This document shows, piece after piece, positions 655 to 37,052 of a DNA stretch of 64,000 nucleotides. The notes under the pieces were generated by a model. It ran no database searches. It saw nothing but the letters and a program-made list of their open reading frames with translations, and was not told the origin of the DNA. Where the stretch lies: contig NC_135763.1 in assembly GCF_052425735.1 (NCBI RefSeq), positions 14,818,001 through 14,882,000 on the forward strand. Direction: 5' to 3'. Both the position numbers and the translations under genes were made by a program. Every line of letters starts with the position of its first letter. Position 1 is the stretch's first letter. The stretch is from Oculina patagonica. Taxonomy: Eukaryota.

Positions 655-1105
655 GGTCATTACCCTGTATTGCATTGCGCATCCTTACTGCGCAGAATTT
701 TACGTGTATTTAGGCGCGCGCGCGCGCGAACATCAACAAAATGGCGACTTTTTTCTGTGTGGCTTAGTCCGCGAGAGAAGTAAATTGTCACTTTCTCCTA
801 AACGAGTCTGGTGACCTATCAATTTTTTCTCATATTTTTGGTGTAGCGATCAAATTCTTTCTGTAAAATGAAAACAGATCAATTCATGTGTTTGAAAAAT
901 AAATTATCGCTAAAAAAGTGTACTTTGCCAGTACTCGCAGAGGAATTATAAAGGAATTATATGGAATATACATGGTCTTCCTGCTCCTAAACGAATCTGG
1001 TGACCCCCCTTTTTTATTTCAAAATTTAAGTTCCCTCAAAGTAATAAACCAGTAGGCGAAGTTTGGTTAAAAAATTGTGTTCAGTTCTATTTCAGGGCAA
1101 TGACC
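655..1105. mobile_element. Non-autonomous TIR element (Kolobok-like MITE)
   Basis: TIRs GGTCATTACCCTG / CAGGGCAATGACC, flanked by TTAA at 651-654 and 1106-1109. Confidence 0.7.
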
Positions 1106-3106
1106 TTAAAAGAAGCCACGTCACGTCGAATTTCACGGGTTTTTGGTCAAAACTATTCTAAAACTGGTGGTAGGCAACTTAACCCATGAAAAGCATTATC
1201 TTTGAACATCTAATGGTATATATAACCTTAATTTGCAGAGGGAAATTAAACCACGGATAAAAATTATGTCGATTTTTTTTAAGATGCGCAGAAACAACTT
1301 GAAAAGATTAGCCTCAATTTTTCAAGTTGTAATCCATTTCTATCCTTACCATCCACAGCTTAAGACGCTTGTTAAATGTTGCAATACAGCAATTGTTAAT
1401 ATATGGAGCATTATTGTTAGGTTTCCTCCGACACAAATATAAATTTTGGCTGTTCAAAAATCTGTGATAATCCGCGACAAAGCCCCTTAAATAACTCTTC
1501 TGGTCCCAGGCTCAAAGTGTCATTTCGCCTTACGGACTGGCGTACATTTTCATCAATTTTAGTTCAGAAAATTTGGTGTTTCATCAATTAGATACTCCTT
1601 TTGTGATCTTGATTGCTTTATCTGCGAAACCTGTCGTCTAGACAGTGAATTTTATATTGCGAGTAGAAATTGAATATGGGGTCACATTTAATTGGTGTTC
1701 AGTCAAGGTGATCACACTTGGAGTCTTCGTTAGTTCCAACTTTATTTGCAGATTATGTGAAACCGCGGCCTAAAATCTTCCTGAGATCGCTAGCTAGTCA
1801 GGATCTTCCGCAAACCGGGAGACTCGTGGGTTTAAAAACCTACAGTACATAACTTCTGACTGGTCATTAGAGGAACACGTATGCGGAAAAATGTAAACTT
1901 CAACATGTTCAACCGAACCTGTATCTTCAAAGAAAAGAATGTGTAATTTATTAAACACGACTGACACCTTGCGCGAATGTTAATATATAGACAAAATGTT
2001 CAAAGAATAGCTCTGTAAAGTAAACGATTCAGAATTTACAACTAAGTGGAGACGCCTGTGGGAAACAATACAGAAGTAAAGCACCACGTTGTACGGCAGA
2101 GTGCTGTTGTTCTAACTGTTAACTTTCTTTCAGAAAATTGATCTGTTGGGAGGAACATTGTCAGTCATGAGCCGGTAAAAGAAACAGAGCAAAAGTACCT
2201 CAAATGTCGCTCTATAAAATCCTAGTTGAATCGAAAACGGAATAGTTCTTGTGCTAATTGCAAAGCTGTAACTAAACATGTACTTGAATGAACCACCTGG
2301 TGATATATTCGTAACACTTGACACTAGTGTTATTAGAAACAGTGGCTTAACATTACAATAAGCATGCAGCCATCCCGAATAAAAAGTATAAGCTGAGCTA
2401 TCTTAAAATTTTGTAGTCAGCGTACAGCCGTCTTCTGTGCGCAGGCTAGAAATCCTGACGACGGCTGATGCAAATGGACTTAACTGGCTCGAAACTGGCG
2501 TTAATACGATTCAAAAACCTCTTCTTCTTTTCGGCCTGAATGAGTCAATGTGTTTTTTAGAAAAGCCTAATGATATCATAAGGCCTTCGAAGAAAATTGT
2601 CTACATGTACATCCTTAAAAGAATAAAGTTGTTTGTGTTTGTATCGATATCTTATGGTAAGTTTCTACCTTTGTTAATGACCAGTGCGGTCTGCGGTTAG
2701 TATCTCAAAATGTCTTCGTGATAGTTGCCCCATTTCATTATTATTTCTATTTATTATTTATCTTTCCTTCTTCCTTTGTACGCGTATTAAAAGGCTGTAA
2801 AGCAAGATCCTTCCTTTTAGTTTACGAAACACTGTTTAAAGCAAACCATCACTACGAAAAGTCCGGAAAATGTGAACCTTTAAGGAAGCATGACAAAAGG
2901 AAACATGAAAATTTGACAATTGAGATGCCAAAAACAAATGAATAACAACCAATAGATATCTAGCGTGATTTAAATGGAAGGAAATGTTCCAGCGATGACT
3001 AATTACACTATGACTAACACGTATTCATATCACGCGACGCGAACAAAAAGAATAAACGTTCGGTCTTTAGGGCTCTTTTTGCTTAGTAGTGCGATCGTAA
3101 GTTTAC

Positions 3107-3228
3107 CTGGCCCCGGTTGTTTAAAGGACGGATGACACTATTCACCGGATCTACTATCCAGTGGATAGCGTAGTATGTTTTGTCAGCTTATCCATGGATA
3201 GTGATTTATCCACGGAATAGCGTTATCC
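3107..3228. mobile_element. Fragment of an abundant palindromic MITE (ggccccggttgtt...ctatccagtggatag family)
   Basis: Same motifs as the copy at 29200-30710 (ctatccagtggata, gtgatttatcc...atagcgttat). Confidence 0.55.
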
Positions 3229-6200
3229 TTAAGTACCAACAATCAAGAAAAGCTAATTCTAAAACGACAATACGTGTTCTTCCTACCTGCTAGGTTGAAG
3301 GCAGCTCTTCTACGTAAGCTTTTCAATCCTTCCACTGAATTATTCTACGTGAACGCGTCACGGTACGATTCGTGGCCTCAGCTCAGCAACACTGACTGAA
3401 ATAGAAGGTGATCAGACAGTCGTTATAGGTAATTTACTTTGTCGATAATTGATCTGCACTTGTTGTTGAGTGACAACTTTGCTTTCTCGCCTGAAGGGGC
3501 GGTATGTTTATCAGATGCAAAACAATAACAACCCTTTGCAACTCACGTCATTGCAAATATCTGAATGCCTCCCTGGTCAATTCTTAATGTTTTTATCGAA
3601 AAGATGCCATCACTGATATGATAAAATCCTACAGTGTTTAAGACAGTGTGATTTGTGAAGTGAAATTCCACTGATGATACTGATTAGTTGAGCTGAGTTC
3701 TTCACCACTGTAGCCCGGGAGTAGCCGGATGTGCGAAGCCGGAATATTTTCTGCTTATGTAATAGGTGTAATTATGGCGATTTTGGTATTTTTGCCGGTA
3801 TTTTGGAGTGGTGAGTGGTCGTCTAACGTTTTTTGGGGGGTGGTTTAACATATACATCTTGTTAGAGCTGGTCACCCTGCGAAGACAGAGTTCGTGAATC
3901 TCTGTCTCGCAGGGAAGTTAGAGGTGTGACGAGGGGAGCTTTGAGGGATTTGAATATCGAATAAGTTGAGCCATGAAATCCCTTGATGCCTTTTTTTTTC
4001 TTTTCTTTTTGTTTTTACTTGTAACATCAGTTTGCATCTTGAATAAAGAATGTATGTTTTGTTATGTTATGTTCTGGGCATTTCTGAAACTCTTGATTTT
4101 TTTAACCTCCCGATAACTCGAATCAAAAGTCGTTTCCTTTCCCTCAGTAGAAGAGGGACTGAATGGGGTTTAGTTTACATTGGCCAATTTTTTAATGTTT
4201 ACTGTTTTCGGAGAAAACACTGTTTAGTGTTTGGAGGTTTTTTCATGAAAAATTTTAGCATTGTAAGTTCTTATTTGCTCTTAAAAAATCGGGTTAAATC
4301 ACACATGAACTTAGAGAAAATTTCGGATTTCTTCTCGGAAATCTTCGGTAGTCTTGGGACATCTTCGATAGCCTCCGGACATCTTCGGCAGTCTTCGGGA
4401 ACGTTTCATAGTCTTCGGAAATCTTCCCAACTGATCGGAAATCGTCGGAAAATGGCCGAAAACTTCTTCATATACTAAACAAAATAACATTGGCCTTTTG
4501 GAGCAATTTTGTTTCTTTTTGAAGAAGATTTACTGTTACAGTCAATTTTTGAGTCTAATGCTTGCGTGCGCTTTGCGCATGCGCATTAGACTCTTTGTTA
4601 TATGAAAAAAGCTGTTAGCAATCCCAAGGGAATGGTTCGGGATCGATAATCGTTCGCTGTAATGTAGAAAACAATGATCAGCTGCAAGAACGGACTCCGT
4701 ACGGACACGCACGATTAGTTTCAATTAAAAACAGCCAATCAGCGACACGTGTTCCCACGCATAATTAAAAGTTCTTTCTCAAGTCACGATTATTCAACAC
4801 TTGAACAGGACGTAATAATTTTCCAGTTAAGACATTTGTAAGCTTTTTGTGAAAATAAATCTTCGTTTTCAGTTCAGTTAAGCACTTGTGTTTTCGTCTT
4901 GCTTAAAAAGCAAGACGTCTTTGAGAAAAAATATTTCGACGGCGACTCGCGTTTATTTACACAATGCGACCAAATATTTATTTTGTTTTAAAAAATAGAA
5001 AACTTTACCTCGTATTTTGTATTTAAGTCATTCGAATTTTGACCAATTTTTTCTTTACAGTGCAAACAAAAACCTTCAAAAATAAAAGATGTACATGGAT
5101 AAATGTGAATCAAGTTACGCGACTAAATCAAAATGCGTTTGTTTGGCCGCTTTGCAGTATTACACTGTCCCGGCCTTTGCCATACACTGAAATCGAATTT
5201 CATGCTTTTACGACTCTCAGAGATCTTAAGTTCTTCTTACAGCTAGAAAAAATCATAAAATGGTTACATTGATATGGAAGTGATGATTCGGGAAATTTGT
5301 ACATCATGATAAACAGTCTTCGCTCCTGTGTATGGTAGCTCGATAATAATTGCCTAGTTTCCAGCGTTCAAAAGGTCATCATTATATTGACGTGAGCATT
5401 TACACCCGTTTTTAGGAAAATCTGTCACTAAGTGCTTACAGTACAATGGAGTAACAGTCACTATTTCAAGTGCTTTTATTGCAAAATCTGTTTCAAGAGT
5501 CATCATCAAAATGGTGAAAAATCTGAAAGAAAACGATGTGAAGTTCTTCAACCCTTGTTGTAATGAACATGCTTTTTGTAAATCGTCACGCAATCTTGTC
5601 CAAATGTTTAATCGTTTCTGCTTTTACGGACAATACGGAAGAAGTAACATCAACTCCTGTTCATACTTTAAATTTTGTGAAGCATATAACATTTATGACT
5701 GTTTCGTTTTCATCCATAATCATCCACGATGCCCCTAGCTTGCTATAAGCATTTTAAATTAAACTCCCGAACACAAACCTCTAACCAATTTTAACCGGCT
5801 TACGAAAACCGCGCAATCTGTATCACTATGCCATACGGCATTAGACTCATGTCACCCTTGGTGACCTATTTTTTACTGTTAATTTTTTTTTAATGTTTTT
5901 TTTTTTTTATTTTTTTTTTTTAATGTTAAACTGCCTTAAATTTTACTGTTTCATGTTACAGAGCCCTGGGACTAATATTGTGGGCTACAGCAGCAGCTGT
6001 GGCCAAAAATAGGGACAGATGGCGAGCATTGATGTCCGGCCCTATCCCCCACCAGGGGGCAAGGAACTAAGATGTTACAGAGCCACAAAATTAAGTGTTA
6101 TCGAGGTACCCCCATTCAGACCCTCGTAGAACACTGTAACTTTACCCCGAATTTCTTGAACTACCCTTGGAGGTTCGAAAATCAGGATTGGATGTATTTT

Positions 6201-15790: not shown

Positions 15791-16048
15791 NNNNNNNNNN
15801 NNNNNNNNNNNNNNNNNNNNNNNNNNNNNNNNNNNNNNNNNNNNNNNNNNNNNNNNNNNNNNNNNNNNNNNNNNNNNNNNNNNNNNNNNNNNNNNNNNNN
15901 NNNNNNNNNNNNNNNNNNNNNNNNNNNNNNNNNNNNNNNNNNNNNNNNNNNNNNNNNNNNNNNNNNNNNNNNNNNNNNNNNNNNNNNNNNNNNNNNNNNN
16001 NNNNNNNNNNNNNNNNNNNNNNNNNNNNNNNNNNNNNNNNNNNNNNNN
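15791..16048. other. Assembly gap (258 N)
   Basis: Run of n. Confidence 1.
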
Positions 16049-25764: not shown

Positions 25765-28700
25765 ATGGCGTTTCACGTTAGCAAGACGAGTATACTAAAC
25801 ACATTGGATTACATTGAAGATGGCCGAGCAGACATATACAAATGGAGTGAAACTAGACAATCAAACCGTAAAGGAATCAGAGGAAAGCTTTACTCGTTCA
25901 AAAAATTGTTCATTGATAAAACTGTAAGCCGAAAGTTTTATTTGTTTATTAGCATTTAAGTTCATCAGATAGAGTTACTGTGATTTGTTGTTTTGGACTG
26001 AAGATTTTTAGCAAAGTTCAATTCCAAGCCAAGTTTTTAATATTGTTTTTGCAGATTTTGCGAAGTTTTGTACATAATCTGACAATAATAGTTTTTCTAC
26101 AAATGGCCCTTGCAGGTAAGTATAAATCATAATGCCATTGTGCCCAATGTGGCATTCCATGGCAGTAACTAAATGACTGTATTTGGCACAAATTTACCAC
26201 AGCCATGTGGTAAATTTGTGTCAAATTAATTTGCATTAAAGTGGCACCAAAGCTTAAAGTGGACGCTATAGCATGTAGTATTCTCCCCTTGAAAGGGACA
26301 CCAGTTCATTTTCAGTCACCCTCTAGCATTTTGAGAGGTTTCCCTACAAGTTTACTAGTACTCTGACAGAGTACCACATACCTTTTGGTGAAAAGAGGTG
26401 CTATTCAGGGCTGTAGCCAAATGAAAAATATTACCAAGCCAATGCCAAAAAAGAAACACTTCTTTCATATTTACCTCCTGCCAGTAATGTTATCTCTTAC
26501 AGGAACATGAAAAAAAAATTATAAATTCAAGATCTTTGGCAAAGCAAGTGCCTCAGTTTACCTGTTCACCTATGGCTCACTATGGGTGTTCTTATCCAAA
26601 AACACAAACAAATTACCCTGGTCATGGCTCCAACCAGGACTGCCTTAATCCAGAGTCCAATGCAGTGACCTTCAGACTACTGTGCCTCTAAATGCATTAG
26701 GGTACTTTTTGTCTTTGTAAAAGGGATACAAAAATCTCTGATTCAAGGTCGTTCAGGGATCAGTGTGTCTGGCTTAATCCCATATTACACACACACCTCT
26801 CTGACTGAAAGGGTGTGTGATAGAGGTCACATGTGTAAGTATAATTTAAAGTTGTTTTCTTCTTTTACATCATCAGCACTTGGAACATTTATGTGCCAGA
26901 CACTTAGTAAGTATCCTATCACAATAGAAATGATGATCAACTAGACAATTTTAGAGACTTCAAGGTTTGAAGTCAAAGTTTCAAGAACCTCTGCTCCTAC
27001 CGAGGGCTGTGGTAACAAGATTGGTTTAAAAGAAGAAAGTTGCACTCATAGTCGTTCATGTGCTTGTAATTCAATCTGTGAAGGTTCCTATAATTGAAAT
27101 TCTGACAGTTGAAAGGAACATATCCCTTAAATTACCCTTGATAGTACCAAACATTCTTTTTTCATTTCATTTTGCAAAATATTGAGAAATAACTACAGTG
27201 TGAAACATGTTGGATGAAGCAATAGTGAGAAGTGCTTTTCCCTTTTGTTGGCATGTAAGGGAATCACAGGTTACCGGCCCCAACATCCTTGCTTGCCCTT
27301 ACAGTTAGGTAGTATCAATTTATACACCTGGGTGGAGAGAGACTGACTATATAATTGTACATATAACATGTCTTACACAAGAACACAAGGTGAAATATGG
27401 CCAGGCTAGAAAACGCCAGCTGACTTTCAATTGCAAACTTCAACACACTTGTGTTGAACAACATCTCTTGCATGCCTTAAAGCTCACTTCATGTATGCAT
27501 TCTTTCAATTCACAGGACTGGACTTTGATGTTCACATGAGTATCTTTGTTTCACCAATTGTATTTCCATTGGCCTTTTCTATTAATGGTTAGTTACAGGA
27601 AATGTGTCCTTATTGTCCTTCAATGAAAATGATAATGATAATGCATTTATGAACATAGTGTAGCACATTAATGACATCATTGTATATGTTCAAATGTGCT
27701 GTACATATGCAGTGTGTAATTTACTACACACAAAGGCCAGACCACAACACTGGGAGCTTGTGCCCCACTCTTTGCAAATAGTGTGTGGGTTCTTTAATGT
27801 CCCCTGCTTTAAGCATGAAGATACAGGAGACAGGACCTACAGTGTATAGTCCTTTTCCGAGAAGACTAGTAATGCCTAATCATTTGTAGAAGTAATTACA
27901 AAGGCAGCACATTCTCCTCAGTTTTTTTAAGACCCTAAGTGTTGGTCCAGTCTGGGGTTCGAACCCTCAACCCTCCCACACACAAATCCCACCAGTTTGG
28001 AGGTTCAAGGTACCAGAAATATTTTTAGTCAAACTCCTCAGGATCCCAAAGGGCTTGGAGTTATAGGTGTCTCGGTGTCCTAGAAATACAGATTCTAGCT
28101 TTCTGTTGAGTTGCCTCAGGGCTTTCTTTGGACTCCAGGCTCCATAGCCAAACCTTGAGGGCTCAGTTATTGTGGAGATAACCCCTTTAGGGCCCTACCT
28201 CCCATCTCAGTGCACGGGTTGCCTGTGTTAGCATTTTGTGGCAAGGGTGCCACTACATGCCGATGATTTCCATACTTGTAAGAAGTTCTAATTGTATTCA
28301 GTGAGTTTCTATTAACTACCTGGTTTAAGGGGTGACCCTTTTGGGTGGAATGACAAGACGGCAATAGTATACTTGTATTTTCCCTAACCAACAAATAAAA
28401 ACTAACCGTAAGCAAACCAGAGTAAAAGCTAACCGCATGCAAACCGGGGTGAAGCTAACCACAAGCAAACCAGAGTGAATTTAACCACAAGCAAACTAGT
28501 GATGTTCTGTCATTTCACCATTCCGCCAAATAGGGTTACCTGGTTAATGTGCTCACCCAGCAAGGAGGAAGTATAAATTACAATGTATGTTCTTGATTGT
28601 TATCTGCTGTATGATGTGCTCATGGATGGTGTTATAGTATGAGCTTATTTGTTAAGACCTTCCCCTTGTGAGCGCAAAACTCTGAACAGTATGTCCTCTC

Positions 28701-31700
28701 CTCTTTCAGTGTCTCCATATTTCTCCTCCCTTCTCTCCCCTCCCCTAACAAAAATATAATTGACATTATTTTAAGAGGGTTGCACTTAATAGCCTTGCAA
28801 CTAACAAACCCCTGGCCCTCGGATTCCAGAACATTGTACAATTTAATACTATTCACTGTTTTTGCTTGCAGCTGATTTTCAGCGGCGTGAAAGGGTTCTT
28901 GAAGACTTAGCACAGTTTAAAGGTGCTCTTGTGGTATTATTTTTCTGCCATAGGGACTGGCTTCAGTCTTCAGGTACATGTAAAATGCTTTAACAGTGTA
29001 CAATGTATAACGGGAAGTAGAATGATAATGATTTTTTAACATGTGGAGATAGTAACGAATACTTGCCATAAGGTGGCCCAAACAATAGCCTCTCTACAAG
29101 CCTTTTGGTTTCCCTTCCCCCAGAACTTTTTCAGCAGTTTTGAATTTTATATATCAAATTTTTAATTTCATGTTATAAAGCGGTTATTTCAACAATGAGA
29201 CCAGGCCCCAGTTGTTCAAAGCATGGATAATGCTCAGGCGGTGTTGGACACGGTTCACGTGACATTTTTCGACCAATCATATGTCACCTTGGTGGAAGCA
29301 ATGGCGGACAATTTTGTCGCGGGATATTAAGAAGGTCTCATCTTTTTCGTGTGATTCCGGCAAAACTTGAACTGTTGTTACGGATTATTTTATTGGAGGT
29401 GGAAGAATAATACCTAGGTCAGTCATCTGTCAAGTTCTGAATTAAGGGAAGCGAGTTTTCTCTCAAAACTAGTCGATTGAAATCATGCTATATGGTAAAG
29501 GGTTGTTTGGCGCAAGCGTTCGACGTCAATGAACATATGGTCATTTCTTTACAAACAAGGATTAGTACTGTAGATTATTTTTGCATAGGACTTAAGTTTG
29601 ATAGTTGAACTTTAAGAAAAGTGCGGTGGGCCCGGGGCGGGCCCCGCCGTTTTAACGGTCAAATTTGGACTTGCAGTTGGGTTTTTTTCCTTGATATGTC
29701 ACTCAGTTCTCTTCCATTTCACGGCATTTTGCGGGAGTTGATGGTGTGATTTCTGTCGATGTTCTTACAGGACAAGGGCTTAATTTGGTACTCCCGTTCA
29801 TGTGTATTTATATTTTAATGTTCACTTGCCATTTTTGTTATTGTAGTGTTTATATCATCCTTTTGTTAAGCCGATATTTGGCATGTCGGAGCGATTGCCC
29901 AGCCACAGGCAGTTGAACTATAATGCTCCCGCAGTCCCGCAGTCGACGAATACACATGTACACTTATCAGCTTTGTCCAACACGCTTTAATAAGAACGAC
30001 AAATTTGCATGTACTCCACTTATACTTGAGAACGATAAATATACATGTGTTCCACTTATCCTTCGCGCAACTCGCTAGTTTTGTTTGACCGATACTCGGC
30101 ATATCTATCAAAACGGCCATTGGGCCCTCCAAGTAAAACAACTCAGCAAAAAACCATCAAAAACCACAATAGGGCGAACTGCGTTGGCCAGCAGTACATC
30201 GACGTGCTTCATTCATTACTCAACATTTCTGAAAAGCAAAGCGCCAAAGATAAGTTCAATTTTAGCCCGTTTACTTCTATCACAAACGTGCTAGAATCGA
30301 ATAATATTTCCAATAGTCGACGAACCGCGATGTTTCTAATCCAAAATATGAGTTGTTCCGCCGTAAATGTTGTCTTTATGAATCCAGCAATACGCATCTA
30401 TGATCATCTATACGTGCTACTAGGCTCGCGAAAGATTTGATATGGATTTCCTACAATATTTCTTTCAGCATTGGAATATCTTCGCACCGCGAAGAGATGT
30501 TTACAGTTCGGCGGTCAGACGATAATAAGTGCAATTGAAAATTTCTTCTGGCATGCTTTGCGAGTCGTGTCCAACACCGCCTGGATAATGCTATCCACCG
30601 CATAAATCGCTATCCAGTGGATAAGTGTTAACAAAACAAACTATGCTTCCTGCTGGAAAGTGATTTATCCCATGGATAGTGTTATTCATCCTTTTAACAA
30701 CTGGGCCCAGCACTGTGAGAGTGTCTCGCCCAAGAACACAACACAAGGGCTTGAGCCCAGACTGTTTGATCCAGAGTCCAGTGTGCTAACCATTAGGCCA
30801 GGCCAATGCGTCTCCCATTCATAATTTGTAGCAGCCATTTAAATTTCTTTTTATGAAACAAGTATTTTTTGTATCGTTCCCAAAACGTACTGAATTACAA
30901 AGTTAACATTTCTTACTATAATCTGGGGATCCTTTTGAAATCCTAAGAATATTCTAAGAGATGGAATGCTTTGGGGAAGGGAGATGCTTCTACGAACTAT
31001 AGTTACTTGTCAATTTATCCTGTTTATTTATCCTGTTTTCATTTTCTTCCAGGTTTACCTAAAGATTTTCTGAAAACTGTAAATACTAAGTTAAAAGGTT
31101 TGGTTTTGAATATCAAAGAGTATCTATTAACTGAGAAACTTATGAGGAGGAACTTTATTCTTTCAGTAAGTAAACCTAAGACGTTTTTTTACCACATTAA
31201 CAGTTAGGATTAAAGTAAAAGGTTAATTCTGCATTCAAGCCTAGTGGCCCGTTAGGTCAGAGCTCATCCCAATTCCTATAGCATGAAGCGACTAAGAGTA
31301 TTTCTATCCCCTCCTTAATGGGATGCTAGTCCATGGCAGGATTATCCCAACATTTAATTTGCTGGTACCCATTTATACACCTGGGTGAAGACATGCACTG
31401 TGAGAGTAAAGTGTCTTGCTCAATAACACAATGCAATGATGCTGGCCAGGGCTCTAACACAAACCGTTAGATCTGGAGTTCAGCATAAAATGTACAGTAC
31501 TTAACCATAAGGCCACCATGCCTCTCTCATTAACAGTTAGACTTGTGCTCAATGTTATCCAACAATATCTTTTTAGTGAAATCTAATGTCATTTCGTGTG
31601 TGTCATAATTTTTCAGGTAATTTATGAAGATTTGAGTGATATAAGCCAGTTGAATGACAAGATAAGATGTTCAAGTTTACCGCACAATTCTCCATTACTA

Positions 31701-34700
31701 ACCAGACTTATTCACTATCACAAGTGAGTTATTATCTCCTTTTGGAAATCTTTGATGAAACATTTTAATTAAACCCCTAAAGAGGATTAATCTGGGTGCG
31801 GCTTAAGCTTCCCCCCCCCCCCCCCTCTCAAAGGATATAATATTTCATGCATGATTGGTCTAGACTGCCAACACAGTACGACAGTGCTTTTTATTTCTTC
31901 GCATGCAACCCTAAACAAGACCCTGATGCCTTATAAAAAATTGGCATTTTGTCCTGGACTAATTGGTATGTGAGACCAAAATCTGTAATTTACATCCTTA
32001 AAGGGGCTGTGTTACCAACATTGAAAGTGCTACCTGAAAATCCAATGAAGGTGTTGGGATTTATCCACTTGTAGTGGCCTGGCCTCATGGCTAAAATGTA
32101 CTGTACTAGTCATGAAAAAAAATTAATATTAAATAATAATTGAAATAATTGGTGATGACAAACATACACATGTATGATTCAGAAATGTACTGCACATGTG
32201 AACTGAGGTGAAAAGGACAAGGAGAAAGAGATCTTTGTGGTTAAATTTCAACTTAAGCAGTTGGAACCTATGACCTCTGCAATTTCCTGCATGTATAAAA
32301 GTAATCTACCGGCATTTCTAAAGTTGCTCTCAGATGGACACCAGAGGGTAAAAGAAAAAGAGGCCTTCCAAAATCCACCTGGAGAAGAACTGCAGAAGCA
32401 GAACTTCAGGCTCTAAATCTTACCTGGGGGCAAGTTTTGCAGCTTGAAAAGGACCAACAGTAATGGAGGCGACTTGTTGATGCCCTATGTGCCACTGGGC
32501 GTTTAAAGGATTGATGATGATGATAAAATTATGTGTTTCTGGTTCATCATAAGTCAATTCAACATAGTAGTGATATATATTTTGTAAGTCATACTGGTGT
32601 TCAGGTTAACATAACAGACGGCCTTCACATGACAAACTATTGGCCAACGCGTGTTGGCAAACTCAAGTTGGTGCGTGTGAATGACGCAGCAACGGCAAAT
32701 AAGTTGGCCGACTGTTGGCGACATAATAGAACTTGTCTCTATTCTCACCAACAGTTTGCCAACTTGTTTGACAACTGTTCTTGTGCCGTTCACACATACC
32801 AACTTGAGTTTGCCATCATGAGTTTGCCAACTTTAGTTTGTCGTGCAAAGGCCGCTTTGCAATGACATGAAGCAATTTGAATTTTAATAAATAAATAAAT
32901 AAATTAATTAATTAATTAATTAGGATTTCTTTTTAATGAATTCAAAATGTTTTATGTCATTGTAAGAGTGTTATGTTCAGGCTCAAACAGATTACCCTAG
33001 GTTGGAAAAAAATTTAACCTGAAAACCAATTGGATCTTTATCATACAGTGTATGCACTATGTATAAGCCATTTTAAATTGCAATCCACAGCTTGATGTGT
33101 CATGCATTTGAGAGACTCCGTGTGATCAGGGAATACCGCTCTCCACGGACCATTCGTTCATTCACTAAAGTGTTTATCTTCCTGATGCCCATTGTACTGT
33201 CTCCGTATTACGTGCACATGGGTATAAAGTCCGGGAACATGTGGAGTCCTTATTACATAGCCGTGCTGACATCATTTATCTTTGGTACATTACAAGGTGT
33301 TCAGGATGTGTTAGATGATCCGTTTGATGGGATAAGTGAGGATGATATTAATCTTGGACAGGTAAGAAGCACACATAATCCTTCAGAAATGGAAGCCTGT
33401 TGAACGGTCTTTGTTGACATTATTTCCTCGTGAGAATAAATTACATAAGTAGAAATAAACCATGATCTGTCGCGAGTCCGTGAATTTGATTGGCTGTGCC
33501 ATTGTTGACTACGATTTGCTGATAGTCAACGCTCGTGTTTGTTTTGTCATGATTCAGGATTTTAGTTGAACATTTAGCTGGGCAAATTCTCCTTCGAAGC
33601 CGCTGTTTGATCATCACACCGCTTTTTCCACACTGACTATATTATGTATAGCGAGGAGAAGCAAAAAGTACCATAATTTTTAGTTAGTTACTGAAAAATA
33701 CTTAGTACTTCGATCAGGGGCACCCAACGAAATAATTGTACTAAAGGTGTCGGAACACCGTTTTTTTGTGCGCTTTAAAGCCTTATTTTTAAACGCTAAG
33801 AATAGTGTATCTTTTCGCATACGCTAGCTAAACTTTCAAACTTCAGAAAATTTTAGGGAACGAAATATTATTACCCAAATTTATAAGTCGCTGTTGCCCT
33901 CTCGAAAATCGTAGCGGGCCTTTTTTCGTGCCCAAAACGATATTTTTCTCTCTCCGAAAACAGCAGGCATTACTTTTCCCATTGTCATGAAGGATTGAGC
34001 TGTAGAAATCTCCAGTTTTTTATCACACTTTAACCCGAGAATCGTAGGCGATTATAGGTCTTCCGAACAGATATTCACCGAAACGATCCGTTGGGTGCCC
34101 CTGTTCGATATTTTCTCATTAATTTAAGAACGGAATGTACTAAAACACCTAACACCGGAAAACACTGGAACAGCGCGCAGTACAGACACCCTTAAAGAGC
34201 GCACTATTCACTTCCGAGCCTTAAGCTTAACGAATAACGGAACCCTAAACTTACCACAGTTTTGGCATTCTGGGGTGTTCTGTGTTCCGGGTTTTAGTAC
34301 ATGCATTCACTAACAGTACAATAATTACACTTCCATCAGTCAGTAGCTTACCACATCGTGACAGACCACGTCCAGAAAAGATTTTTAGACCTCGTTTTTA
34401 TTTGTCTCTTTATTCAGCTGGAAGACTGGACAGCACAGTCGCTTCTCACAAACAGAACCATCACCATTGGTCGCTTCACTGTGACTACAAAAGGAAAAGA
34501 AAAAATGGAACTCAGTGACAGTGACGATGATGACGGGCCGAGTCCCATGATACTCCACCCGCCTAAGGTGCAACACAAACGGAAGCCCATCCTCAGGAAA
34601 CCGAGCTTCCGCAGGGTGGAGCACGGGGAGGAAAACCCCGACCAGGCCCATCGAAAATTGTCCCTCTATCCAGAAACTGCTTCACGCTTGGAAGACTTAA

Positions 34701-37052
34701 CGCGTCGTGGGCTCACCGGAAGTACAACGATACTTCCGGGAATGAAACTAAAAAGGTCCAACAGCGATAGCCTGACCGCTAGCAACTCGCGTGCATCGCT
34801 GGCTCAGGAGTTTTTTAGAGCTCAGGGAATGGACAGTAGCGGACGTGACTCGAAGAAGGTTTCGTTCTCGACAGGAACCCGTGGTTTGTCAGATGACCAA
34901 GGCGAATCTGACAACGAGGACAGTGTTTTTGTTTCTCCCAGATCCCATTCCGACCCATCTAAATATTCGCGGCCATCTTGGATGTTAGATGAAAATGAAC
35001 CATTGTTAATTTCTTTAGACAGTAGATCCGGCTCTTCTGAGACTGGCACCAGTTCCCTTAACACCCCTGAGATGAACCGAAGGGCGCTCCCTGAAGATCT
35101 TTTTGAAGGACTTAAAAATTCTCCTGGCACGAATTTAGTCGATATGCGTTTTTCCGTAAACAAGAAAAAGGGTAAACCTCCTCTAGCGAGTTTGTTCGAC
35201 ACAGATCCAGGACATTCTGTTGATAGTACCGACGGACCTGCTCCCCCTGAGCCAAGTCAACCGGCTTCGATGCCTTCGTCTTTACAAAACTTATTTGGTC
35301 CTCCACGAAATCCCAACAAAGAGGTACCCGCACCTAGCGGCGGCTCGTCCCTTCCCGAGAGACCTCGCCCGCGGGTTCTTCCCATATCTCCTTTGGCACG
35401 TCCCGAAAGTCCACCGACTTCTCGTTCCAATGTCCCCTCATTGCCGGCATCTCGGATCAGCCGCTCGGCTCCAACCTCACCTGAACAAGAAAGATGGAAT
35501 GCCTTTCGAGGAATTTCTGCTCCGTTGACTCCTTCGCCGGAAGATGCGGTCGCTATTCCTTTGAAATCGGTAACTCGGAAAACGTCGGCTGACATTCCTG
35601 TAAGGAAAAAGTCCAGTGATTCGACATCCGGGAATTCAAGGTTTGCGGTCAACGCTCCTGCCCAGACTCCTGCAGTAGAAAATGTAGGACAAGTTTCGGA
35701 TGATCCATTGCCAACCTCCAAAAGGAAAAAGTCTAGTGACATTTCTTCTTTGAATTCAAGGTTTGCAGTCAACACCAGTGCCCAGACTCCTGCGGTAGAT
35801 AATTCAACACAAGTTCCGTTGGCACCTGAAAAATCTGGGACAGACGACAGCACGACTGCTTCCAAGCCAATTGATATGCCAAGATCGAGGGTAAGAAATC
35901 TCTAGATTTATTCTGTAGGACTGTACTTTCCTATTTTATGTGCCACCTTCCTTCAAGCCCCGAGAATGATCAGTATTTAATCATTAAATCATTAAAGTTT
36001 TTCCTAACACAATCAGTACATTGTCAGGCATACAGACACAGGTTATAAGAACAACAAAAGTCATTGATGTGTTTCCAAATTCTTAGCCATAGCATTAAAA
36101 GAAATGTATTTCAAATAGTACGGAGAATTGATATCGTGATCAGAGTTCCAATGTCGATGATGTACTACTGGAGTTATATCTTCAAAAACAGCATTTTTAT
36201 CGACCCCTTTACAAATAAGAGGAAATTCCAGAAAAAAAGGCTTTAAGGCTGGTTCTCATATGATCGCCCTGATCGCAGCCTTAAACAAGCTGGGTGACCT
36301 CCATGACAACTTTTTTTGATAGGATAAATTGACCACTGTGGCACATTTGGAAAGAGTACTCTCTGAGTGTTTTGCTCCGACGAAGGGCTAAATTCGCTAC
36401 GGCGGAAACTGACCGACCCATCGACTGAACTGCTAGCATTCGCGTTTCGTTTTGGGCATAAAATATACGTCGTTACATCTCTTAGCCTTCAATGCAGGTG
36501 TATTCTTTAGCGCCGCAAGCCGATTTTCAGTGAGCGTACAAGCGCCATCTTGGATTCAATAGGGAGTAGGAGTGAGGCCAATTACGCGAACAAAATGATT
36601 CAAGGCTCGCCCATGAAAACGTCTGCATTGCAGGTTATTCATCTCTCAACCCAAAAACATAGGGAAAGATGCTCGGAATTTAGGATGGAAGACAAGTAGA
36701 CAACAGACTCTTAAGCTAAAAATTTTTTTAGAGTTATCACAAACTGTTTCTCCTCATTGACATGTGATCAAACTTTCCTCTGCAGTTCAATGTCGCCAGG
36801 CCTACAAATGATGTTATTAATGCTGAGAAACCTAGAGAAGACCAGCCGCTTGTGACGTCAGGTTTTCCGAATTACGGTGTCACGGACCCCTCCCCTCCCC
36901 AGAGCGTTCAAAGCACACCATCGTCTAGATTCAAAGTGAACAGTCCAAGAAAAACTTCACAGCAGACTGTACGAGAAGGTGAAGAAGAGACTAAGCCCGA
37001 CTCTTTTCAACTCTTGACCCTTGACGGTGACAGCACTGAGGTTTTCATTTAA
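25765..37052 (+). CDS. Bestrophin-like (prokaryote/protist-type) putative anion channel with long disordered C-tail, 884 aa; exons 25765..25923, 26055..26115, 26877..26906, 27516..27587, 28872..28973, 31053..31165, 31617..31723, 33091..33361, 34418..35890, 36786..37052
   Basis: All nine introns are GT-AG with consistent phase, giving a 2655-nt ORF. Four hydrophobic segments; SPIVFPLAFSINADFQRRE after TM2; AFERLRVIREYRSP; LQGVQDVLDDPFDGISEDDI, equivalent to the bestrophin E(D/N)PFG..D acidic motif. The exact start codon is less certain. Confidence 0.85.
27722..27975 (-). mobile_element. SINE-like repeat in an intron
   Basis: caaaggccagaccacaacac...gtgtgtgggttctttaa...gggttcgaaccc (tRNA B-box-like end). 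Confidence 0.5.
29235..30583. mobile_element. 1349-bp non-autonomous DNA transposon with 18-bp perfect TIR and 9-bp TSD, nested in a MITE (29200..30710)
   Basis: TIR CAGGCGGTGTTGGACACG / CGTGTCCAACACCGCCTG; TSD GATAATGCT at 29226-29234 and 30584-30592. Confidence 0.9.
31230..31526 (-). mobile_element. tRNA-derived SINE (reverse copy)
   Basis: Reverse complement of the 45889-46125 repeat (gggatgctagtcca, ggtacccatttatacacctggg, gtgtcttgc..aa.aacacaa). Confidence 0.7.
32618..32856. mobile_element. Harbinger-type MITE
   Basis: cggccttcacatgacaaact ... agtttgtcgtgcaaaggccg inverted termini with internal gttggc/gccaac repeats. Confidence 0.6.
33715..34103. mobile_element. MITE with CAGGGGCACCCAAC TIR and 6-bp TSD, copy 2
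   Basis: TSD TTCGAT at 33709-33714 and 34104-34109. Confidence 0.85.

Follow-up and report, generated by a model that had tools for sequence, protein, structure and literature searches.

A bestrophin-fold membrane protein of the coral Oculina patagonica with RFxV and RVxF-type motifs in its predicted disordered tail: a candidate effector of the WNK-OSR1/SPAK cascade

The window analysed here is a stretch of 64,000 nucleotides from the genome of the coral Oculina patagonica (contig NC_135763.1, positions 14,818,001 to 14,882,000), and it contains the gene for a protein of 884 amino acids that NCBI lists as "uncharacterized protein LOC144656007". This protein combines an N-terminal membrane domain of the bestrophin type with a long tail bearing six R-F-x-V motifs, which resemble the peptides bound by the CCT domains of the kinases OSR1/SPAK and WNK, and a K-K-V-x-F motif of the type that docks protein phosphatase 1 (PP1). 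An earlier reading of the DNA, made from the letters alone (henceforth the original prediction), had proposed on these grounds a new effector of the WNK-OSR1/SPAK cascade. A splice-site search recovered a single GT-AG chain of ten coding exons on the forward strand (25765-37052), which yields exactly the NCBI protein, and the open reading frame of the tail is 100% identical to it (Table 1). The 529-Mb assembly contains one copy of the gene, and confusion with a paralogue can thus be rejected.

Table 1. Exons of LOC144656007 and features of its tail, in window coordinates
Feature	Position	Strand	Basis or remark
Exons 1-4 of the bestrophin-fold membrane domain (exons 1-8, residues 1-305)	25765-25923, 26055-26115, 26877-26906, 27516-27587	+	First four of eight
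Exons 5-8 of the same domain	28872-28973, 31053-31165, 31617-31723, 33091-33361	+	Exon chain, AlphaFold2, Foldseek
Exon 9, residues 306-796: end of the folded domain (helix 304-314, hairpin), then disordered Ser/Pro-rich tail	34418-35890	+	Translation, spliced contigs, AlphaFold2
Exon 10, residues 797-884 and stop codon	36786-37052	+	Translation, spliced contigs, exon chain
Motif 1, G-RFTV-T	34472-34483	+	Inside predicted hairpin 34457-34486, residues 319-328 (TITIGRFTVT)
Conserved island KRKPILRKPSF, residues 359-369	34577-34609	+	Coral alignment; second in conservation
Conserved island GLTGSTTILPGMKLKRSNSDSL, residues 403-424	34709-34774	+	Coral alignment; first in conservation
KKVSF, PP1-type RVxF motif, residues 451-455	34853-34867	+	Translation, coral alignment
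Motif 2, RFSV, residues 549-552	35147-35158	+	Translation
Tandem duplication	35602-35818 (copies 35602-35698 and 35722-35818)	+	Each copy encodes RKKSSD...NSRFAVN...AQTPAV
Motif 3, RFAV	35639-35650	+	First copy of the tandem duplication
Motif 4, RFAV	35759-35770	+	Second copy of the tandem duplication
Motif 5, RFNV, split by intron 9	R 35888-35890, FNV 36786-36794	+	Joint 35890|36786 in three runs
Motif 6, RFKV, residues 844-847	36927-36938	+	Translation
C-terminal EVFI, residues 881-884	37038-37049	+	Homologue comparison

The proposal depends on exons 9 and 10 being joined to the exons for the membrane domain, and transcript data bear this out. The joints 33361|34418 and 35890|36786, both with GT..AG borders, are present in contigs from three runs belonging to three studies, and one spliced contig of 2817 nucleotides spans exons 8, 9 and 10; an unspliced form is carried by one DNA-like run. 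Translation across 35890|36786 gives an open tail of 579 amino acids that ends at the stop codon and consists of 15% Ser and 11% Pro, in agreement with the Ser/Pro-rich tail of about 580 residues foreseen originally. If the tail and the membrane domain were separate proteins, united by an artefact of the gene model, neither the spanning contig nor the joints would be expected; moreover, two transcript-derived full-length orthologues of 846 and 861 amino acids have the same architecture as the Oculina protein, and homologues of the hydrozoan type encode domain and tail in one open reading frame. Nothing that would favour such an artefact was found, and we regard it as having next to no probability.

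The nature of the membrane domain had to be established indirectly, since Pfam returned no bestrophin match (PF01062 or PF25539) for the whole coral protein or for its residues 1-330; exon 8 alone matched PF25539 (Bestrophin_2) at E = 0.21. We therefore assigned the fold via relatives and structure. Residues 1-315, used as the query of an exhaustive HMMER search, brought up 963 relatives, and of 71 sampled ones 42 match PF25539 at E <= 0.01, the best at 1.5e-7. An AlphaFold2 model of the domain, built on the alignment of these relatives, has a predicted local distance difference test score (pLDDT) of 88.8 and a predicted template modelling score (pTM) of 0.83. Among the matches listed by Foldseek against the PDB, 50 of 50 are chains of KpBest, the bestrophin homologue of Klebsiella (probability 1.0, TM-scores of, for example, 0.55/0.66 and up to 0.57/0.72), and among those listed against AFDB/Swiss-Prot 30 of 30 belong to the bestrophin superfamily, with the bacterial YneE and sll1024 leading, followed by plant VCCN1/2 and then by animal and nematode bestrophins. 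Model and structure searches thus agree with the bestrophin-like fold claimed in the original prediction, and on their basis the N-terminal domain of LOC144656007 is of the bestrophin type, a fold defined by four membrane helices and a helical cytosolic bundle.

Within the superfamily, the coral domain is nearer to the bacterial and plant type than to the animal RFP-TM type. With KpBest, YneE, sll1024 and VCCN1/2, the group of PF25539, it has the fold in common over coral residues ~52-314 at a probability of 1.0; however, sequence identity is 13-19%, and these proteins, at ~300-410 amino acids, have no room for a tail of 550 residues. The animal BEST1-4 (PF01062) have the superfamily fold (ranks 11-30 among the matches listed) and, like the coral protein, long divergent regulatory C-terminal tails, but their folds are more distant than the bacterial/plant ones, with TM-scores by hit of 0.26-0.45. 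A family signature, D-D-P-F-D-G..E-D-D-I, aligns with L-E-D-P-F-G of KpBest. In the 71 relatives F100 is invariant and F104 at least 90% conserved; these residues align to pore-neck positions of KpBest, the hydrophobic neck of bestrophins being a feature of the second membrane helix, but do so within a very weak segment of 2.2 bits in the hidden Markov model alignment, and in a profile search of PDB sequences the KpBest matches are themselves weak (E 0.07-0.2), so that this is a hint on the pore neck only. By analogy with its relatives the channel is probably pentameric. Its ion selectivity is less clear than the designation "anion channel" in the original prediction would have it: YneE and VCCN1 are named anion channels in Swiss-Prot, whereas KpBest, the nearest solved relative, is reported to be cation-selective, and for the coral protein the designation is hence an assumption.

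Translation places all six RFxV motifs and KKVSF where they had been predicted, including the RFNV that arises only across the splice joint 35890/36786. The residue preceding the motif is G or S in five of six cases, as had been noted; the exception is motif 2, where Oculina has M but 38 of 41 aligned corals have G. In the full-length AlphaFold2 model, residues 335-884 stay below a pLDDT of 50 and lack secondary structure. Predicted disorder consequently extends over motifs 2-6 as well as KKVSF and the basophilic Ser sites listed in the original prediction (RKPS, RKLS, KRSNS, RKTS and RKKSS, all of which are present), and motifs 2-6 would be accessible there, on the cytosolic side if the topology is that of bestrophins.

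The abundance of the motif is far beyond what the composition of the tail would generate. From composition, 0.10 RFx[VI] are expected in the 579 residues as opposed to the six observed, and in 200,000 shuffles of the tail the maximum count was 4, five never being reached. As a guard against the post-hoc choice of the motif, we counted any gapped triplet with an expectation below 0.25, and five or more copies of one were seen in 8 of 5,000 shuffles. Across 27 family tails, which are related, so that their counts are not phylogenetically independent events and weigh correspondingly less in favour of docking, RFx[VI] occurs 36 times versus 1.93 expected and RFxL eight times versus 1.27 expected, whereas for the controls KFx[VI], RYx[VI], RLx[VI], FRx[VI] and the motif read backwards the counts match or nearly match expectation. 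The expectation of 0.10 and the shuffle maximum of 4 lead us to reject a chance origin, and the behaviour of the control motifs a generic basic-aromatic bias in composition. The enrichment, for which the original prediction had suggested a comparison with shuffled tails, is therefore real and specific to this motif.

These motifs fit what is known of CCT ligands in several respects. R-F-x-V/I is the core consensus of such ligands (PMC12413468; bioRxiv 10.64898/2026.04.15.718729), and the canonical RFxV also binds the CCT1 domain of WNK (bioRxiv 10.64898/2026.04.15.718729). The ligand adds to the domain as a β-strand, Pro near the core is disfavoured, and OSR1 prefers Gly at position -2 (PMC12413468). 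For WNK peptides the Ki is 2.5-13 µM (PMC12413468). Pro is missing from -2 to +3 in all six coral motifs; at -2, motif 1 has G, as does motif 2 of most corals, while motifs 3-6 have S.

The coral genome also encodes the cognate domains. PF12202 (OSR1_C) matches at three loci, two of which are WNK CCT1 exons immediately following the end of the kinase domain, while the third is the CCT of OSR1/SPAK, with the activation-loop exon of that kinase (DFGVS...KVRKTFVGTPCWMAPEV) lying 8 kb upstream of it. The OSR1 CCT lies on the minus strand of C7 near 12.5529-12.5539 Mb, divided among several exons of ~17-23 codons, which retain six of six residues (I450, F452, D459, E467, L468 and L473) listed as contacting the GRFQVT peptide (bioRxiv 10.1101/2021.08.19.456998). 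About 10 kb downstream of one of the WNK CCT1 exons is an open exon of 520 codons with KRRFTV and QGRFIVS; a coral WNK thus bears RFxV motifs itself, which implies that the docking system of motif and domain is in use in this coral. The WNK loci, on C10 at ~10.05 Mb and on C8 at ~6.38 Mb, have almost identical exons for the end of the kinase and CCT1 (1402-1665 and 1342-1662 in the respective extracts), and their sequences suggest a recent duplication of WNK in this coral.

The motif recurs at large evolutionary distances within Cnidaria. Tails of hydrozoan and further homologues are 16-23% identical to that of Oculina, yet have RFx[VI], typically with a distal S-RF-K-[VL]. The Hydra tail has GRFQVS, VRFCVN and SRFKVN, that of Hydractinia GRFQVS and SRFHIF, and the homologue P0043 three motifs. 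The most widely kept RFxV of the family is G-R-F-x-V-[STN] next to the domain, found in Hydra, Hydractinia and ~15 other homologues with T, Q, K, H or N as x. Among stony corals, motif 2 retains R in 38, F in 35 and V in 33 of 41 sequences (GRFSVNKPKG in Acropora); the site of motifs 3 and 4 has one RFAV in the relative P0015 and RFAI in Acropora; that of motif 5 has RFNV, RFDV, RFSL or RFTL in transcript-derived orthologues; and motif 6 reads RFKV or RFQV among the other robust corals. Tails of Acropora, which are 42% identical to the Oculina tail, retain RFTV, RFSV and RFAI and have RFTL at motif 5. Of these two kinds of conservation, judged from sequence comparison, the recurrence at greater distance is the stronger evidence.

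The named homologues outside stony corals come from Hydra, Hydractinia, Actinostola and Monosiga. The relative from the last, Monosiga brevicollis (P0081, 1013 amino acids), has a bestrophin-like domain that is 38% identical and a tail of 700 residues with zero RFx[VI]; a long tail may therefore predate the motifs.

Several observations weigh against the motifs being docking sites. In an alignment of 42 stony-coral sequences, scored as identity to the Oculina residue with p obtained by resampling, motifs 2-4 have a mean of 0.77 in their R, F and V columns, in comparison with 0.62 for the disordered background (p ~0.05), so that their conservation within Scleractinia appears marginally above that of the rest of the tail, and the islands 359-369 and 403-424 are conserved far better than the RFxV cores. 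Acropora has lost motif 6 (SRLQR at its site) and one RFAV unit, and several orthologous sites read RFxL (the eight cases above), Leu not being an established residue of CCT ligands at the V/I position. The number six overstates the independent sites, for it includes a tandem-duplicate pair and a motif within a predicted hairpin. Finally, a change of G to S at -2 lowers the affinity of the WNK4 peptide (PMC12413468), and the Ser at this position in four of the tail motifs is unfavourable for that reason. The conservation of the motifs in orthologues, on which the original prediction had laid weight, is accordingly a mixed result: it holds for hydrozoan tails that are otherwise barely alignable, but within stony corals it is borderline and blurred by RFxL variants.

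Some of these observations would also be expected if the motifs had no specific function and were neutral by-products of a low-complexity tail evolving by internal duplication and drift. Motifs 3 and 4 stem from one recent tandem duplication, detected by a repeat search as a 97-nucleotide direct repeat with a 120-nucleotide period and 77% identity, and since they are one duplicated unit the independent origins number at most five. Motifs 3-6 are alike in their S-R-F-x-V-N/A flavour and could descend from a single ancestral unit; copy number varies, with six in Oculina versus 3-4 in Acropora, and a conservation so little above background is what drift would leave. On the other hand, the same search of the DNA found no repeat connecting the remaining motifs. 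Tails of hydrozoans that are ~17-20% identical have RFx[VI] at comparable positions, with R, F and V kept while x varies, and neutral duplication would hardly account for the excess over the family or for control motifs at expectation. Such an origin thus seems to us quite improbable.

A more serious alternative is suggested by motif 1. G-RFTV-T forms the second strand of the predicted hairpin (its strands span 319-322 and 325-328 when the domain is modelled by itself, and 320-322 and 325-327 in the full-length model, at a pLDDT of ~64-82), and in many relatives the first strand has a similar alternating pattern, R-x-[FI]-x-[VI] or R-T-[I/F]-x-[I/V]. The pattern of motif 1 fits a WNK-type G-R-F-x-V ligand and, equally, a strand with one buried face; its place in such a hairpin may point to a structural role, which would count against docking at this site. 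More generally, the R-F-x-V/L segments might be β-strand peptides for a partner other than CCT, be it the cytosolic domain of the channel itself, in auto-inhibition or inactivation, or another domain that binds by β-augmentation, and their likeness to CCT ligands would then be a coincidence. The C-terminal inactivation peptide of BEST1 is a model for such tethered auto-inhibition. The frequent L in place of V in orthologues would be more natural for a hydrophobic strand of a generic kind than for a CCT pocket specific to V/I, and the conserved [DE][VI]F[IV] at the C-terminus and other islands imply several partners of the tail. Yet the excess is specific to R-F, as the KF, RY and RL variants are not enriched; motifs 2-6 are predicted to be disordered, and the full-length model shows no packing of them against the domain; and we know of no other domain that reads exactly R-F-x-V. 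We consider a non-CCT partner unlikely, though clearly less so than neutral drift.

Apart from RFxV, the tail has other conserved elements. K451, V453 and F455 of KKVSF are invariant in 41 of 41 coral sequences, the consensus being K-[KR]-V-x-F with W, S, K or T as x, and KKVSF is also present in the homologue P0052. The motif conforms to the PP1-docking pattern [RK]-x(0,1)-[VI]-{P}-[FW]. A single RVxF-type motif would be unremarkable by chance, and the weight of this one as a putative PP1 site comes from its conservation. The two best-conserved islands of the tail, GLTGSTTILPGMKLKRSNSDSL and KRKPILRKPSF, are not RFxV motifs. The former, in which the conservation in a seven-residue window peaks at 1.00 at residue 412, is invariant in 41 corals and has G-N-T-T-I as its hydrozoan counterpart. 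By analogy, T408/T409 followed by I410 in this island are candidate phospho-acceptors for a Ste20-type kinase; they lie ~85 residues after motif 1 and ~40 before KKVSF. At the extreme C-terminus [DE]-[VI]-F-[IV] recurs, as EVFI or EVYI in corals, EIFI in Hydra and Hydractinia, and DVFV or NVFI in other homologues; to judge by its sequence and position, a role as a signal of the PDZ type or for export is conceivable.

Two systems in which this regulatory logic is already known offer a frame for the coral protein; the novelty of the latter lies in the fold that carries the motifs, in how many motifs there are and in the lineage. The disordered N-terminus of NKCC1 (SLC12A2) combines RFxV docking of SPAK/OSR1 with an RVxF motif for PP1, and its phospho-acceptor Ser/Thr residues are tens of residues away. 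The coral tail is likewise predicted to be disordered and joins R-F-x-V to an RVxF motif of the PP1 type, but it belongs to a channel with a bestrophin fold, not to a cotransporter with an APC fold, and it is found at the C-terminus and has 5-6 motifs as against 1-2, all of this being known from sequence. In the ClC anion channel CLH-3b of Caenorhabditis elegans a SPAK-binding motif lies in the cytosolic C-terminal region, and GCK-3, the orthologue of SPAK/OSR1, must dock there in order to inhibit the channel; it phosphorylates Ser residues 70-75 residues downstream of the docking motif, each followed by a hydrophobic residue (PMC2606941). The spacing of T408/T409-I410 from motif 1 is reminiscent of this arrangement, although CLH-3b has a ClC fold and one docking motif, whereas the coral protein has a bestrophin fold and its regulation is postulated. 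CLH-3b and GCK-3 are nonetheless a precedent for an anion channel under such regulation. A third parallel is provided by the C-termini of WNKs and the long isoforms of TSC22D, which are disordered, contain several CCT-binding motifs and assemble OSR1/SPAK, WNK and NRBP (bioRxiv 10.64898/2026.04.15.718729); these are soluble signalling proteins, in contrast to the coral motifs, which are attached to a membrane channel.

By analogy with these systems, the cytosolic tail of ~550 residues would serve as an intrinsically disordered docking platform, with the [G/S]-R-F-x-V repeats as ligands for the C-terminal CCT of coral OSR1/SPAK and possibly for the CCT1 of WNK. A kinase docked in this way would phosphorylate Ser/Thr sites of the tail, and PP1 recruited to the invariant K-K-V-x-F would reverse this; the logic would equal that of the NKCC1 N-terminus and of CLH-3b. 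Docking could in turn be tuned by the RKKS sites that precede the RFAV motifs by twelve residues. It is in this sense that we infer binding, phospho-acceptor sites, an effect on gating and a physiological role. That at least one of the tail motifs is a true CCT ligand strikes us, given the sequences, as an evenly balanced proposition, and for LOC144656007 being a bestrophin-fold channel with its disordered tail as a regulatory docking platform for OSR1/SPAK and PP1 the case for and the case against are likewise about equal. A broader proposal, under which a whole cnidarian clade of bestrophin-fold proteins acts both as a direct membrane effector and as a multivalent WNK-OSR1/SPAK scaffold, coupling the sensing of chloride or volume to an anion (Cl-/HCO3-) or cation flux, is tentative and on the doubtful side. 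The candidate effector status proposed originally is partly supported: the partner domains with an intact pocket in the genome and K-[KR]-V-x-F in 41 of 41 corals speak for it, while the count of six motifs on which it was built was too generous.

In line with the statement in the original prediction that no bestrophin of such architecture was known, the literature searched contained nothing that connects any protein of the bestrophin family with RFxV or with docking of OSR1/SPAK; in that on coral calcification and cnidarians, nothing described this bestrophin-fold family. The membrane targets known for the WNK-OSR1/SPAK pathway are cotransporters of the SLC12 family, a single ClC channel from a nematode and some Kir channels. 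If docking is real, LOC144656007 would be the first member of the bestrophin superfamily to be tied to this pathway and would represent a new class of effector, and the coupling would be older than Bilateria. To our knowledge it has the densest RFxV array on a membrane protein. In pentameric form the protein would present as many as 25-30 RFxV sites together with five PP1 sites, and could in this way concentrate kinase and phosphatase at the channel. It would also offer a tractable model of multivalent CCT docking. The channel family, which is uncharacterised and belongs to Cnidaria, with relatives in choanoflagellates, is of interest in itself because Pfam misses the coral protein, and it may matter for osmoregulation, symbiosis or calcification in corals.

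Some minor features concern the structure of the gene and its surroundings. Two homologues, P0052 (from a TARA metagenome scaffold) and P0047, have domain and tail in one uninterrupted open reading frame each (1001-2971 and 1001-3319 in their own loci, respectively), as opposed to the ten exons of the coral gene; intron content therefore varies widely within the family. Segments of introns 8 (33685-34232) and 9 (36151-36287) have contig depths, summed over many contigs, of thousands to tens of thousands with many loose ends in the DNA-like run, and are high-copy interspersed repeats. A run of 258 N at 15791-16048 of the window marks an assembly gap or a masked stretch.

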